DNA from: Pelomyxa schiedti
Taxonomy: Eukaryota; Protista; Evosea
Assembly: GCA_020536535.1 (NCBI GenBank)
Contig: JAHLWZ010000579.1
Location: forward strand, 78,832 to 142,831
Direction of reading: 5' to 3'
DNA: 64,000 nucleotides
Below, piece after piece: positions 36,549-42,857 of this stretch. Position numbers and translations under genes: made by a program. How positions within the stretch are numbered: position 1 is the first letter of the stretch; each line of letters begins with the position of its first letter. The notes under the pieces were generated by a model. That model was not told the origin of the DNA. It was given only the letters and a program-made list of their open reading frames with translations, and ran no database searches.

Positions 36549-37759
36549 ATGATCGACCCCACGACGACATCCGCCAGCACCACCAGGATTGGCCCGCCTC
36601 CTCTGCCCGAGCTGGGCGTCGCGACGCGGCTCAGCGCGAGCTCGCAGTACATCTCGTTCGCGCTGTGCCTGAGCCCGCGCGCGGGGGCCCGCAGCGCGGC
36701 GGGCCTGCTCACGCCGCCGCTGGTGCACTACATCGCGAGGAAGTACGTCCTCGGGGGGCGCCACGTCGCGCTCAAGTTCTACGTGCCCGGGCGCCCCGAG
36801 CTCGGCCGCGCCGAGGACACGCTGTACGTCTCGCTGTTCGTGTCGCCGACGCTGGGCGTGACCCGCGGGTGTCCCGCGTCCCCGGCGACGTGCTCGGGTG
36901 GATCGACGAGCGCACCGCCATCGTGATGCTGGAGATGCGCGTCAGGATCTGGGACGTCGACGAGGCCAGGTTCGTGCACTCGATGCAGTACTCTCCCACA
37001 ATCAGCCTGCAGCAGTTTGTGTGCAACAAGCGGTGGATCGTGTGCGTCGACCGGGCCACCCGCCGCCTCTTCATCTGGAAGGTTTCGCCCGGTGGCGGCG
37101 GCAGCAGCAGATCCCCGGTCCCGGTCGAACCCCCAGTCTCGGCCGAGATCTTCCCGCCGTGGGACGAGGCCAAGCTGCACTTCACGGCCACCGAGGACGG
37201 AATCTCCACGTGCGACGAGCTGTCGATTCTGCTAAAGGACACCGAGGCCACCAAAGGCTGGTACCTGCAGAAACTGGACCTTTCCAGGGCCTTTGGCGAG
37301 GCCGACGCGTCGTCGGCTGTGTGCCTGCCGATAATCTGCCACGACAACACACCCAACAGGGAAATCCTGCCGTGCAACAAGACTCTGGTGGCCAAGGGGA
37401 CTCTGATTGTGCCGTTCCTGAACCCTGACACGACCTCGGCTTACTTGATAAACGTGGACAAGAACAAAGCCAGGCGCGTGCCGAACATTTCGGTGATTCA
37501 TTGCATAGACATCACGCACTTTGGCTTGGTGCCCACCACGAACACCAGCTCCCTGGTTGTGTACCACACGCACACGTACCCCACGCCGACGTTCACCCAC
37601 AAAATCCCTGGGAATTACCGCTGTGGGCACGGGTTTATATACCACCATCAGAGGACTTCTACGCACAATCAAGTAATGCAAGTTATAGACGCCACATCCG
37701 GCACCGTGGTACTTACCCTCTCAGGCTTCATCCTGCAGTTCTTTGTGTATGTTTATTAG
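36549..37759 (+). CDS. Hypothetical beta-propeller-like protein with an N-terminal HxRCG-type motif; apparent frameshift near 36867
   Basis: Two overlapping GC-rich ORFs (36549-36926 and 36665-37759) join if one extra G is added in CGCGGGTGT. The N-terminal part reads SASSQYISFALCLSPRAGARSAA. Confidence 0.6.
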
Positions 37760-37855
37760 CGCGTGTAAAGTAATTAATTACCTGTTTTGGATACTCTGTT
37801 ACTTGCGTACACCCAAAAGAGAAAAAAACCTTTTGGAAGAAAAAAAAACCAATCA

Positions 37856-40800
37856 ATGTCCACCTGCAATACAACAACAGGAAGTCCCCCCACAGAAACA
37901 ACCAAGGGCAGTGGTTCAAGAGGGCTTACAATTTCAAAGAAGCTGGGCTATGTGGTCACAAACTTTGGGCTGGAATTCGCGGCTAGTGTGTGGGGCCTGT
38001 TTTGCATTCATTTTATGACAGATGTGGCTGGGTTGAGTGCGGCCAAGGCTGGATGGGTGTGTGGGGGTGTTTCTTGCTTTACTACTCTATGTTTCTACAA
38101 CGAGGGTGGTTTTTTCATAGTGTTCTGATTCCAAACCTTCTTTTTTGGGGTGCTTCAAAAGGTCAATATGTTGTATAGGTGGTGGGGTAGGACCTTTCAT
38201 TGCCTGTAAAACTGTAATTTACTTGGTCTACAGATGCTCTGAATGACCCGATTGTGGCACAGATGTCTGATCACACTCATCACAGGATGGGAAGGAGGAG
38301 ACCCTATATGATGTATCTTATTTTTTAACATTACTTCAATTCCACTTACTTGGTTATCCATTCCACAATTCAGGTACATGGCTGTTCCTTACGGCATCTT
38401 GTGGTTCATCAATTGGTTTGTACCAAGTTCGAGTCAATGGGCCCTGTTTTGGTGGTTCCTACTCATTCAACTGGTATTCAATATGCTTTCTTTTTTTGAT
38501 AATCTAAGTGTAAAAATGTAGGGTTCCGACTTAGCTTTTACGTGTATCAATGTGCCTCATCTCGCACTCCTTAATGATCTTACCGACGACTATAAAGAGC
38601 GATTTCAAGTAAACACATTGCGTATAGTAGCTTCTGTGTGTGGCCAAGTGACCTCTTTTGTCATGGTGGCAATTCTTACCTCACTTATAACCAATGTATC
38701 AAGGCGATTTCAGGTTTGATTACCCTTCTATGGCAACTATATCCTTGTGGATTATAACATGAAAGAAAGGTGATTGGGCTATTTGTGTGCGTAGTGATTA
38801 TTGTATGTGTAGAGACAAGTGTCTATTGTACCGCCGGAGCTGCGCACTCCCAACCACCTGTAGAGCAAACCCCAGCTCATTCGATGTGGATTCTTAACAG
38901 CTTGATAACAATGGGAAGATCGATGAAACTCTTGCTATCTGTGCAAGAGTACAGAGTGACTCTTGGTTCGTATTATTATAGTCTTTCCGAGAATGAAATA
39001 ACGTCAGCAAGGGATTTACGTTTTGAGTTCCGTCTGTATGCAACTCTCTCTTGTCATGGTTCCCTATTTCCTTCAGGTTTCTTTTTGGTTGTTCACTGTT
39101 TGGATTTCACTTATTGCTCTTCTTCTGTAACACAGAAGTTCATGTGGCTTCCAATGATCGAGACAGTGAAGATTTCCATTATAACCCTAGTATTTGCGCT
39201 TATTGCAGCAGTCACAATTCTTCGGTTGCTAAAGAGAGTTGATAAACGAACCCTTTATTTTGCCAGTGCTTCTGCCTGGGTGCTGTTCTACATCCTTGGA
39301 TTTTTCTTAGTGGGAAGAGTAAGCACTTCCATCTGAGTGAAGTATCTCACTCACGACAGACAAACTATTGGACGGTCCTCTTCCTAATCCCCCTTCTGGG
39401 AACTGGCACCGCTGCCACCTTCTTAATTCCCTTTTCAATGTTAAATGACAGTGCCGATTATGTAGAACTACATACTGGGAAGAGAATGGATGCACTGGCA
39501 TTTGGCTTAGCGCATGCCTCTCAAAAATTCACTCTTGGCTGTGCTGTGTTCATTTTTGAGACTGTTCTGGCAGTGAATGGATACAGCCCCAATGACTACC
39601 ATGTATTTTCTAACTCCTTTTTGCGTCTCTCACGTCAGATCAAAGAATGCAGAAGATGTCCCAGTTAGAGTTTTATGGGCAATTAAGCTTATGTTCACAC
39701 TTTTCCCTCTCGGGTTACTCACAACTGCACTTGTGGTGAACATTTTCAACCGAATAAGTGCTGTATCTCATGAAGCTGTTCTACAGCAACTGAAGCACGA
39801 TAGTGAAAAAGGGTCACTACAGGGTAACCATTTTACTTGTATTCATTTCTGATTTTATAAGGGAGGAGTATTGGTTCTCCACCTTTCATTACATACTTCC
39901 TTTTGGATGGTGTACGTTCCGATATCTTTAGTCAAGAACTAGATGCTGGCAATTTGCCTAACCTCAGAGAACTTATTCATAGTGGTACGTTTGTGCGAAA
40001 TGGAATCACTGCAGTCCCAAGGTTTCCTTCAAAAATTGTTTGTTTTTCCCTTACCTTCTTGGTTAGTATCACTGGATACGCCTTTATCCCCCATATCACT
40101 GGTCAGGATGCTGCGGCTAGTGGGGTTCTAGGATTGCGCTGGTTCAATCGGCAATTAGCCATTGGGAATGTTAGGTCGTATGTGGGCAAGACAAATGTCA
40201 ACATGGATTTGGACCTATCTAACCGCTTGGTGACTGTATTCGAGCACCATGTGAATCAGCACTCGACAACATTTCAGAGCTGTATGAAGATCCCACTTTA
40301 CCCATTACTCATGGGAAATATCAGATATGACCCGTGGAGCTGAAGTTATCAATCATTTTGGATGGCCTGTGACAACAGCGAAATACATTGGCCATCATTG
40401 GCTGTTCAATATTCTGAGCAAGATTCCTTTTGTATGCAAAAACTGGTTCAGCTATGAGTCCTTTATTATAGATGAAGCTATCAAAGGTGAAGGGTATGCA
40501 TCCTACAATTCACACTGACTCAAAAGTAGATCTTGCTCAACAACCTAAAGTTCAGTGGATAACTCTCGCTAGTCCAGATGGCGTTGTCCATATGGAAGGG
40601 GTAACAAAGAAATACCGAGACCTTTTGGTGCACCTTGATACAGAGAGTGTGTAGAAGTAACTGGTGTTTATTGTACTAACTTGCGCAGTTGGAAGGTACC
40701 GAAAAGCTAGCAAACAGTTAGGCCAAGAGGAATCACGAATTTACTGTGTAATAAGGTCGCCATACCTCCTAAGCACCTCACAGCTAAACCCTCCCAGTGA

Positions 40801-41952
40801 CCATGGAATGAGTGATGTTCATCATAATATTGAAGTCACATCAGAATTACAGGTGAATTGTTTACTGAGAAGTATTTAAAAATAAAAAAACCGCTAGGCA
40901 CACTATAGTTTCCGTGCATTCCGTTGTACACCATCCACAAATATTCTCAGCAGCAATCTTGACACACCTTGTGCCTTTTATAATAACTTTGACGTGATCA
41001 ACTGCATTAATGGGAACCTTATGAGTTTCTTGTACTTCAAGCATCCAACATTGGGGTGGAGGCATTCCCCAGAATATCAGCATTTACTTGCTTACCCCGC
41101 ACCAAATGGAGAACTGGTTTTTTCTTTCACATGGAAATGCGAAATCATAACGCATAGTCAGGTCAATCTACCAGAAGTGTTCTTGAAAACTCCCGGAATT
41201 CGATTTGTTCTGTTGAGGGCATCTTCACCTCTCACCGTTCTTCTCCTAAGTATACATGGGAAGGCAGAGGTATGTCAACTTTACTATGGCGAAATTAACT
41301 CGCCTAGCTAAGTTCTCCTGATGGTATATCTTTTTCCTACACTGTGGAGTCGGAAGATCCACTACAAGAGGGAACTAAACCATATCCACTGTCTAACACT
41401 GGCCTGTGAGTAGATGCAACCGCCGTTTTGATGTGAAAATTTCACTAATATCTGGGCAGCCATCACATCAGGGAGTGGTTAGCCAGTACTTATGATTCAG
41501 CTTTTCCCTTGGCACCCTGCAGACTTTGGAGATTGTTTTTCAATTCCTATGCACAGACAGGTTTCATTCCCTTCTTCTCCTTATCAGTTTCCAGCATAGT
41601 TATTTACTTTGCTGAAAATTCAAAAAAAGGTGACATCGTGCTCGTGGCTTCCGATCTCTACGATTTTGGAGAAAATTATGAAGTTTTCACTGGGAACTAC
41701 CGTGGTGGACATGGTGGAATCTCACACGAGCAACTGTGCGTGCCATTTATCCTCAGCGGCCCTGGAGTAAAACCAGGGGTAGTTCTGGACACAGCACTGG
41801 CAGAAGATGTGGGACAAACTGTGCTGCATCTGTTGGGATGTACAATAAGTGAGATATCTCTGCCCCCTTTTTTTTATTCTCCCTCTCAACTACTACTAGA
41901 CAGCAACCCTGAAGCCGGCGTTGTACTCTCCCCAGCCCTGGAACACAATTAA
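37856..41952 (+). CDS. Fusion of a GPH/MelB-type MFS transporter and an alkaline-phosphatase-superfamily (nucleotide pyrophosphatase/phosphodiesterase) domain
   Basis: MFS motifs KKLGY, DALNDPIVAQMSD...GRRRPY, NVPHLALLNDLT, SMLNDSADYVELHTGKRMDAL. A 38-nt intron (39824-39861) joins in frame to FITYFLLDGVRSD, PSIT, SPDGVVH, ISDHG, RGGHGG and VPFILSGPGV. Confidence 0.85.
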
Positions 41953-42092
41953 ATGCCTTTTTAATGCTAGTTTGTTGGTTTCGTTAAAACACGTTTGCTT
42001 TGGCATAATTACCAACTTTTTGCTTCTTTTTTTCAGCACAGTTGTGTGAAACACACAATTAAACTCATCCCTTGCTCCATCTTAGCACAGAA

Positions 42093-42857
42093 TCAAGGAT
42101 ATCTCGCTGCCAAGATTCCAACGAATCTCTCCACAACATCAATGTTTTGAATTGGAACGTACTGCGGATCATGTTCAAGAAGGAGTGCATGGTATTGTCG
42201 GTAATGAAGAAACTTTACGGCAGTTACTTCAGTTGCCTGAAGTCTCATTGTGCTTATGTCAAGTCCATCCATTTGCAAAAGATACACATCAACCCATTCC
42301 TGGGGAAAAAGTTGGTGTGTGAGGCCTGTTGGAGGGAAGGTTTACCTTGTTGATAAATGTACCACCGTTCAGTACAAAACTCTGGAAATGTGTAAATAGC
42401 AGCTCGAGCTTGGAACCATCAACAACGAGGCCAAGCTCCTCTTCCAATTCCCTCAACGCACTCTCTCTGCTATCATCCCCAGCGGAGATGTGTCCAGCTT
42501 GTGACCAACTGTAAATAACCGGAACGGTACAATGGCATTGTGCACTATGGGTCACACCTTACCTGAGGATATATCCCACATTCCAGGAAAGGAATCTTTC
42601 TTCCAATGCCTCTGCTGCAACAATAGGTTTCCCTTGCTGCATTTTGCAATTGTTACAACAATGTTGCGAAAGCTCATTCGCGAATAGCATTTTTTTCATT
42701 TGGGAATGGGTCGGTGGCGGCATCACCTGTCCACTATCCAGGTGTGCACGACTCTGTGTGGTCTCCCTTCCTTGTGGGCCTGCGATCTCGTCACAACTCG
42801 CCCCGTTTTTGCCCCTGTCGTCTCGTCCAACTCATCAAAGCACTCTTCGGTGGCCAT
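42093..42857 (-). CDS. NUDIX hydrolase (IDI-like subfamily)
   Basis: MATEECFDELD...HRVVHTWI, LLLQQRHWKKDSFPGMWDISSAGH, and Nudix box GHISAGDDSRESALRELEEELGL. Confidence 0.9.

Follow-up and report, generated by a model that had tools for sequence, protein, structure and literature searches.

A transporter–hydrolase fusion gene of Pelomyxa schiedti and its possible role at the cytoplasmic face of the membrane

The gene described here joins, in the anaerobic amoeba Pelomyxa schiedti, a membrane transporter of the MelB-like GPH family (MFS_2 in Pfam) to a hydrolase of the alkaline phosphatase superfamily. It lies on the plus strand of a 64,000-nucleotide stretch of assembly GCA_020536535.1 (contig JAHLWZ010000579.1, positions 78,832 to 142,831; C579:78832-142831), referred to as the window, from whose first letter all positions are counted. 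The single-cell genome of this organism comprises 52.4 Mb in 5337 scaffolds, with 7.4 introns per gene (PMC8887013); the assembly searched holds 52,367,397 bases in 5337 contigs. Three-frame translation shows short open segments chained along the plus strand from 37856 to 41952. A public protein, GenBank KAH3760902.1 (P0001, 1011 amino acids), threads exactly onto this interval as 22 exons and 21 GT-AG introns of 38-105 nucleotides (median 45). Its GenBank name, 'Type I phosphodiesterase / nucleotide pyrophosphatase [Pelomyxa schiedti]', leaves the transporter unmentioned. The principal features of the gene are as follows.

37856..41952, plus strand: complete coding sequence of the fusion gene, 22 exons, 1011 codons and a TAA stop, from the threading of the public protein and cDNA joints
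37856-38056, 38162-38186, 38234-38312, 38374-38473, 38522-38713, 38770-38965, 39012-39076, 39136-39318, plus strand: exons 1-8
39360-39602, 39646-39823, 39862-40021, 40067-40281, 40325-40486, 40530-40646, 40689-40755, plus strand: exons 9-15
40798-40852, 40898-41116, 41162-41269, 41308-41405, 41460-41560, 41630-41848, 41900-41952, plus strand: exons 16-22
37835..37855, plus strand: 5' untranslated region, from the cDNA 5' end at 37835
39824..39861, plus strand: junction intron between the transporter half and the hydrolase half, 38 nucleotides, GT-AG, present in a cDNA joint and in the public model
39850..39852, plus strand: in-frame TGA that would end an MFS-only protein upon retention of the junction intron
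41849..41899, plus strand: last intron, 51 nucleotides, in frame, from a cDNA loose end and the public model

It is close to certain that one expressed gene encodes the fusion, through one mRNA and one reading frame with both domains intact. A single 3125-nucleotide contig of run X4, at a depth of 37, covers 37835..41848 and beyond with the introns spliced out. Run X4 belongs to the same study as the genome, and this one study supplies all read data. It is classed as cDNA on two grounds: it is fully spliced, and it begins with a template-switch oligo. The loose 5' end of the contig, ACGCAGAGTACATGG, is the Smart-seq2 oligo and marks the capped 5' end at 37835; use of the Smart-seq2 method is confirmed in the Pelomyxa genome paper (PMC8887013). 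The joint at 39822/39861 is recorded as 'skips 38, GT..AG', with at least 159 letters on its shorter side. An earlier sequence-only reading of this DNA had proposed that the 38-nucleotide GT-AG intron at 39824-39861 joins ...EKGSLQG to RSIGSPPFITYFLLDG in frame, and the sequence, the X4 joint and the public model all agree with it. All 14 cDNA joints listed for the gene occur in the public model, and the unlisted introns between 40022 and 40897 (215 nucleotides removed) are consistent with the X4 contig's own coordinates. The 3' part of the gene shows the same splices in two further RNA runs. A loose end of run X2 after 41848 (ACAGCAACCCT) matches 41900 onwards, placing 41849-41899 among the sequences spliced out. 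The earlier gene model had lacked this last 51-nucleotide intron and has to be corrected on that point, as both cDNA and public model show its removal.

The in-frame stop which that reading had placed within the unspliced junction does exist; it is the TGA at 39850-39852, not the triplet at 39849-39851. Transcripts ending there, together with a separate hydrolase mRNA, had been named as an observation that would speak against a fusion. The contig spanning the junction is spliced. No form retaining the junction intron was seen in these contigs, which drop rare variants. The enzyme half has no signal peptide, as was claimed, and no start of its own: the first methionine past the junction is M587, downstream of the catalytic residues D503 and T543, so that a complete enzyme could not be made from an internal start. 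Bacterial contamination was also considered and is ruled out by the 21 spliceosomal introns. Two introns, 40022-40066 (45 nucleotides) and 41849-41899 (51 nucleotides), are multiples of three and lack stop codons; their retention would give an in-frame insertion just before the Thr nucleophile or near the C-terminus, respectively.

The fusion is found in a second organism. When 1.84 billion representative proteins were searched with the first hydrolase exon, P0001 itself was recovered at 99% identity, and 139 proteins matched at E <= 0.001. The match lies near residue 500 in two of these, P0001 and a protein designated P0015, and in no others. P0015 is encoded on the environmental JGI contig L002 (Ga0150984_111154930), which is 3191 nucleotides long, almost exactly one gene in length and free of introns; the contig probably derives from the mRNA of a different eukaryote. 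P0015 carries both MFS_2 and Phosphodiest in Pfam scans and aligns with P0001 at 39% identity, colinear over 738 residues across the junction (2e-171). A one-base frame change at L002:2318-2413, between the SDHG and NGN regions, leaves the rest of the hydrolase downstream and gives gene-caller products of 767 and 230 amino acids. Either a sequencing error or a genuine lesion could account for it.

A metagenome scan with the hydrolase family returned 55 bacterial-type loci and no fusion. A corresponding scan with the two fused MFS halves found no relative and did not recover L002 itself; the collection does not hold every JGI contig, and this blank means little. Literature searches found no characterised protein and no relevant paper that pairs MFS_2 with a phosphodiesterase, and the gene goes unmentioned in the Pelomyxa genome paper (PMC8887013). 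The earlier statement that the architecture is not known from characterised proteins therefore stands, with the addition that the fused model is already public as KAH3760902.1. The architecture is thus unremarked, not undiscovered. Nor is it a common annotated family, the possibility raised against it at the outset, with two fused sequences among the representatives searched. Judged by sequence, the fusion is real, very rare and conserved in a second organism. The Pelomyxa evidence consists of assembled contigs, not single long reads, and comes entirely from one study, which leaves some room for two neighbouring genes that only an assembly error or transcriptional read-through, together with a wrong gene model, has joined. 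Such an artefact is extremely unlikely: it would have to account for a precise, frame-keeping GT-AG joint with at least 159 letters on the shorter side, for a hydrolase half without a start codon before its catalytic residues, and for the same colinear fusion on the independent contig L002 from another organism. Contigs of run X3, which is unspliced DNA, moreover confirm the genomic order.

The first half of the protein is a twelve-helix carrier.

37949..39756 (introns included), plus strand: MFS_2/GPH transporter domain, residues 32-465, 12 transmembrane helices, from Pfam, TIGR00792, AF2 and Foldseek
38186..38247, plus strand: codons of D76 (38186 and 38234-38235, split by an intron) and D80 (38245-38247) in the motif WDALNDP
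Residues 26-57, 62-88, 98-114, 123-155, 159-190, 194-219: AF2 helices 1-6
Residues 258-288, 293-317, 323-344, 350-386, 391-419, 435-461: AF2 helices 7-12, after the loop helix

The Pfam family MFS_2 (PF13347) matches P0001 over residues 32-465 at 1.5e-61, scoring 208.7 bits (cut-off 27) and covering profile positions 2-425 of 427; scanned exon by exon, it appears on two exons (1.8e-7 and 1.3e-13). The gph model TIGR00792 matches at 2.3e-52. Its score of 178 bits is under the strict 231-bit cut-off and marks the transporter half as a divergent family member. The two halves were folded separately with AF2, from 29 sequences for the transporter and 38 for the hydrolase. The transporter model (pLDDT 87.8) shows 12 long helices plus the usual loop helix. 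D76 and D80 of WDALNDP align with the MelB motif WDAINDP (D55/D59) and with WDAITDP of MFSD2A; D76 is invariant and D80 nearly invariant in the MFS alignment (A4). The GPH/MelB-type identity assigned earlier is upheld by the full-length MFS_2 profile, the 12 helices and this cation-site Asp pair, and homology suggests that the transporter half mediates cation-coupled inward transport. Foldseek places MFSD2A first (1.2e-16, TM-scores 0.81/0.87) and MelB next (1.1e-12). By sequence, MFSD2A matches at 7.4e-21 in two separate stretches (22-181 and 304-461), compared with 4.7e-18 for MelB, whose match spans the full length of the transporter half. MFSD2A leads MelB by small margins in both sequence and fold, and the latter ranking may be skewed by the conformation in which the transporter was modelled. 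Stand-alone MFS_2 proteins outside its own clade (see below) share no more than 28% identity with the transporter half.

The second half is predicted to be a two-metal phosphodiesterase.

39879..41949 (introns included), plus strand: hydrolase domain of the alkaline phosphatase superfamily with an NPP fold, residues 494-1011, from Pfam, AF2 and Foldseek
39906..39908, plus strand: D503, metal ligand (LLDG), invariant, column D18 of A1
40071..40073, plus strand: T543, predicted nucleophile (PSITGY), nearly invariant, column T58 of A1, aligned with PSLT of Xanthomonas NPP (Xac NPP)
40577..40591, plus strand: D683 and H687, metal ligands (PDGVVH), invariant, columns D198 and H202 of A1
40799..40804, plus strand: D729 and H730, metal ligands (SDHG), invariant, columns D244 and H245 of A1, aligned with SDHG of Xac NPP
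41710..41712, plus strand: H949, metal ligand (GGHG), invariant, column H464 of A1

Here A1 is the alignment of the hydrolase family, with 38 members. Phosphodiest (PF01663) matches P0001 over residues 500-742 at 4.3e-15 (56.6 bits, cut-off 23), with partial coverage of the profile (positions 4-233 of 342). Exon-wise searches are weak, with E 0.062 for Phosphodiest on the first hydrolase exon and E 0.04 for Xac NPP; it was the search of the 1.84 billion representatives that brought the family out. The family profile matches Xac NPP at 3.5e-12. The AF2 model has a pLDDT of 94.9 and an NPP fold; its nearest structure in Foldseek is Xac NPP (7n1s; 8.8e-20, TM-score by target 0.77), followed by ENPP7, ENPP1 and ENPP6. 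Across the 38 family members the six metal ligands are invariant and the Thr nucleophile is nearly so. The full bimetal site listed in the sequence-only reading (D503, T543, D683/H687, D729/H730 and H949) is accordingly present and near-invariant, and the hydrolase half is predicted to act as a two-metal phosphodiesterase with a Thr nucleophile.

The side of the membrane on which this enzyme works depends on the segment that connects it to the carrier.

39757..39878, plus strand: linker, residues 466-493, a polar helix (467-482) followed by low-confidence coil, not transmembrane

A hydropathy scan found no hydrophobic segment in the linker, and the AF2 model contains no thirteenth helix. In P0015 the linker is even more charged and likewise free of hydrophobic stretches. 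The MFS_2 and gph profiles, each describing 12 helices, are covered end to end and leave no room for an extra helix. MFS termini are cytoplasmic in MelB and MFSD2A. With twelve helices, no thirteenth and a polar linker, the enzyme should be on the same side as these termini, and it is very likely that the catalytic domain is held at the cytoplasmic face, tethered at the inner mouth of the transporter. The topology prediction thus agrees with the cytosolic enzyme proposed earlier, and the stand-alone relatives are extracytoplasmic. NPP enzymes are typically ecto-enzymes, and the known relatives of this enzyme work outside the cytoplasm; an extracytoplasmic or lumenal catalytic domain would, however, demand an unconventional topology of the transporter half. 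This is very unlikely given the twelve helices, the polar 16-residue helix that follows the last of them, the full coverage of the 12-helix profiles and the charged linker of the second fused protein. In addition, no conserved cysteine occurs among the invariant or nearly invariant columns of the hydrolase family.

Stand-alone relatives of the hydrolase include m51a1_g6519 of Mastigamoeba balamuthi (632 amino acids, 40% identity) and bacterial proteins of about 560 amino acids (520-640). A total of 61 loci were found in 185,579 species-representative genomes, distributed among Myxococcota, Eisenbacteria, Gemmatimonadota, Bdellovibrionota and many Saprospiraceae; the metagenomes supplied the 55 further loci mentioned above. 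The family is therefore rare in bacteria and occurs mostly in Myxococcota, Bdellovibrionota and Saprospiraceae, lineages known for predatory or gliding lifestyles. A protein atlas also points to look-alike hydrolase clusters in Asgard archaea. In most stand-alone homologues inspected, a positive stretch and hydrophobic helix, or else a lipobox, lies 10-25 residues before the conserved start of the domain (PPYLTxFLxDG). Such an anchor or lipobox identifies these relatives as tethered exo-enzymes of the outer face.

The bacterial loci also share neighbours. A gene for an MMPL protein lies directly beside the hydrolase in 14 of the 61 genome loci and 15 of the 55 metagenome loci (29/116). These loci are of the Myxococcota type, closest to the amoeba enzyme, and the orientation of the neighbour varies. 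The MMPL protein is most like the lipid exporters HpnN, HAE3 and BstA, with scores under their strict cut-offs. Among Myxococcota-type bacteria the stand-alone hydrolase nearly always adjoins an HpnN/HAE3-like MMPL transporter. Thirteen loci of the Saprospiraceae type have a different neighbour, a methylenetetrahydrofolate reductase gene about 110 nucleotides upstream of the hydrolase. The bacterial neighbourhoods of the nearest stand-alone MFS_2 proteins contain no phosphodiesterase.

The two halves have separate histories. A quick maximum-likelihood tree groups the three eukaryotic hydrolases (SH-aLRT 94) within a Myxococcota-type clade (support 100); each of them has a long branch, and their branching order is unreliable. 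The hydrolase is single-copy in the Pelomyxa genome. An unfused MFS_2 paralogue, about 43% identical in matched exons, is encoded at C809:28150-29930 (L091:4151-5930) with no hydrolase downstream. Together with both fused MFS halves, this paralogue makes up a separate clade of three sequences so far, on a long branch and with a support of 100. With regard to the bacterial origin raised earlier for each half, the hydrolase is of a bacterial, Myxococcota-like type and the MFS half falls in its distinct three-sequence clade. It would appear that the hydrolase entered amoebozoans from Myxococcota-like bacteria and lost its own anchor on being placed after an MFS_2 gene from the clade that otherwise comprises the Pelomyxa paralogue and one environmental transcript. 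The simplest story is that it is free-standing and anchored in Mastigamoeba and became fused in the Pelomyxa line and one other organism. Relative to the free-standing enzymes, the fusion would then have exchanged both the tether and the side of the membrane.

The fusion gene has neighbours on both sides. A Nudix-hydrolase gene lies tail to tail with the fusion gene on the minus strand (41999-42566; Pfam NUDIX 3.2e-5 on the exon 42289-42555), with an intron at about 42299-42344 (CT..AC, the minus-strand form of GT-AG) that is seen in cDNA. To judge from contig extents, the 3' ends of the fusion and Nudix transcripts appear to meet or overlap near 41999-42005. Just upstream, on the plus strand, a 364-codon open frame (36665-37759) lies within a locally GC-rich stretch (57% versus about 43% elsewhere). 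Its N-terminal part is rich in Arg, Ala and Pro, it has no Pfam match, and an X2 RNA contig covers 37400-37736. Neither an Rfam nor a tRNA scan of the window gave a hit.

The following mechanism is proposed. (i) The transporter would import, or flip to the inner leaflet, an amphipathic solute that contains a phosphodiester, the likeliest being a lysophospholipid or a glycerophosphodiester-type compound. (ii) The tethered enzyme would cleave off the head group at once and release a phosphate-containing product in the cytosol. (iii) Cleavage of this immediacy would make uptake irreversible. On balance, the chances lean towards functional coupling of the halves in the import direction; the direction is suggested by retention of the cation-site Asp pair D76/D80. 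Context indicates that the substrate is probably amphipathic or lipid-like, since the enzyme family is always held at a membrane surface and its closest bacterial members lie beside lipid exporters, and since the transporter half is marginally nearest MFSD2A and ENPP7 and ENPP6 are among the best structural matches of the enzyme. Both are NPPs of lipids or choline phosphodiesters. A lysolipid in particular is a tentative candidate, on the doubtful side. Equally speculative is the most specific form of the model, a one-chain salvage machine in which an MFSD2A-like, cation-driven flippase presents the lysophospholipid head group to the tethered NPP at the inner leaflet; the lysophospholipids might come, for example, from digested bacterial prey or endosymbiont vacuoles.

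Several observations weigh against coupled import. The cytoplasmic placement of the enzyme is argued from homology, and a minor, intron-retaining MFS-only isoform may exist, being compatible with the contig data. The MFS half is compatible to about the same degree with sugar transport of the MelB type and lipid transport of the MFSD2A type, and the structural preference for MFSD2A may reflect only the modelled inward-open conformation. The nucleotide-cleaving enzymes Xac NPP and ENPP1 are as good matches to the hydrolase half as the NPPs of the lipid type. No MFS_2 gene lies within the flanks of the bacterial hydrolase loci (0/116), and the MMPL neighbour is absent from the Bacteroidota loci. 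Where it is present, the link is guilt by association, and MMPL proteins export, whereas the proposed model imports.

Some of these points would be expected if the halves were independent, the MFS half carrying a glycoside or another ordinary GPH substrate, or serving mainly to anchor or target the enzyme, and the enzyme acting on an unrelated substrate at the membrane surface. Besides the full-length match to the sugar carrier MelB and the lack of a bacterial locus linking the enzyme to an MFS_2 gene, this explanation can draw on the stand-alone homologues, which are tethered by interchangeable means (transmembrane anchor or lipobox), so that tethering itself seems to be selected. It is nevertheless a doubtful alternative. 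A 12-helix transporter with a conserved Asp pair is a costly anchor, and the fusion is kept at 39% identity in the second organism with both halves intact. It also puts the enzyme opposite the membrane face of its ancestral substrate, unless that substrate is carried across.

The exporters beside the bacterial enzyme invite a different coupling, directed outwards. Here the cytoplasmic enzyme would make or trim a compound, for instance by removing the phospho-head group from a lipid, and the MFS half would export the product or flip it outward. The conserved bacterial neighbour is indeed an HpnN/HAE3-type exporter, MFS transporters are able to run in either direction, and MFSD2B and Spns2 export sphingosine-1-phosphate. 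This order of events is improbable: the protein retains the cation-site residues that characterise GPH/MFSD2A symporters, and the bacterial enzyme is on the outer face, after export, so that the order of the steps would need reversal.

Gene fusion is among the strongest hints available from sequence alone that two activities share one substrate. The present fusion ties the MFSD2A/MelB transporter family to a phosphodiesterase family that is often found beside hopanoid- or sterol-type lipid exporters. MFSD2A is the omega-3 lysolipid carrier of the brain, and its family is of medical interest. If coupled import is correct, the fusion offers a handle on the substrate of both families, and it shows how an exo-enzyme acquired from bacteria can find a new use at the opposite face of a eukaryotic membrane. 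It would also be the second natural example, after LplT-Aas (discussed below), of an MFS carrier that hands its cargo to a fused enzyme. Should the salvage version hold, uptake would be made irreversible by hydrolysis, a form undescribed for MFS, with an ecto-enzyme turned inside by fusion. If the halves are independent, the gene would be no more than an oddity of domain shuffling in an amoeba that has received little study.

The Pelomyxa protein can be compared with five known systems. With MelB (TC 2.A.2) and MFSD2A, the latter a sodium-dependent lysophosphatidylcholine symporter, it shares the full-length MFS_2 and TIGR00792 matches, the 12 helices, the motif WDAxNDP, the conserved Lys in helix 11 and TM-scores of 0.81-0.87. 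The sugar-binding residues K18/D19 of MelB are replaced by L/E, however, and D124 by N. The transporter half also sits on a long branch, and its 520-residue C-terminal enzyme is found in no characterised GPH or MFSD2A-type member.

The hydrolase half resembles the NPP/ENPP enzymes (Xanthomonas NPP, ENPP1, ENPP6 and ENPP7) in its fold (TM-scores by target 0.75-0.77), six metal ligands and Thr nucleophile. It differs from them in sequence (13-16% identity), in being about 140 residues longer than their cores of about 385 residues and in a beta-rich stretch at about residues 294-383 of the hydrolase model. In further contrast to these ecto-enzymes, it is predicted to be cytoplasmic. It belongs to a family of bacterial 'alkaline phosphatase family protein' entries of about 560 amino acids that no NCBIfam model names. 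Its stand-alone homologues in Mastigamoeba, Myxococcota, Saprospiraceae, Bdellovibrionota and Eisenbacteria are 33-43% identical over the whole catalytic domain and keep the same invariant residues; they differ in having one N-terminal helix or lipobox and an outward-facing enzyme, and none is fused or adjacent to MFS_2.

In general layout the protein also recalls LtaS and EptA, in which an N-terminal multi-helix membrane part precedes a C-terminal metalloenzyme of the same superfamily with a Thr nucleophile, and the last exon of the fusion gene has a weak match to LtaS. LtaS and EptA have five helices of a non-MFS type, a catalytic domain of the Sulfatase Pfam family outside the membrane, and transferase activity. 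The remaining comparison is with LplT-Aas, by which Gram-negative bacteria remodel lysophospholipids: the flippase LplT, an MFS protein, forms a complex with Aas, an enzyme of the cytoplasmic face, and in some bacteria a single open reading frame encodes both (PMC11416262). LplT is of the MFS_1 type rather than GPH and has no sequence relationship to the Pelomyxa protein. Aas, an acyltransferase/acyl-ACP synthetase, rebuilds the lipid, whereas a metallo-phosphodiesterase would cleave it. Even so, this handover of an inward-flipped lysolipid from an MFS carrier to an enzyme at the cytoplasmic face is the closest known working principle, one that the Pelomyxa protein matches in layout only.

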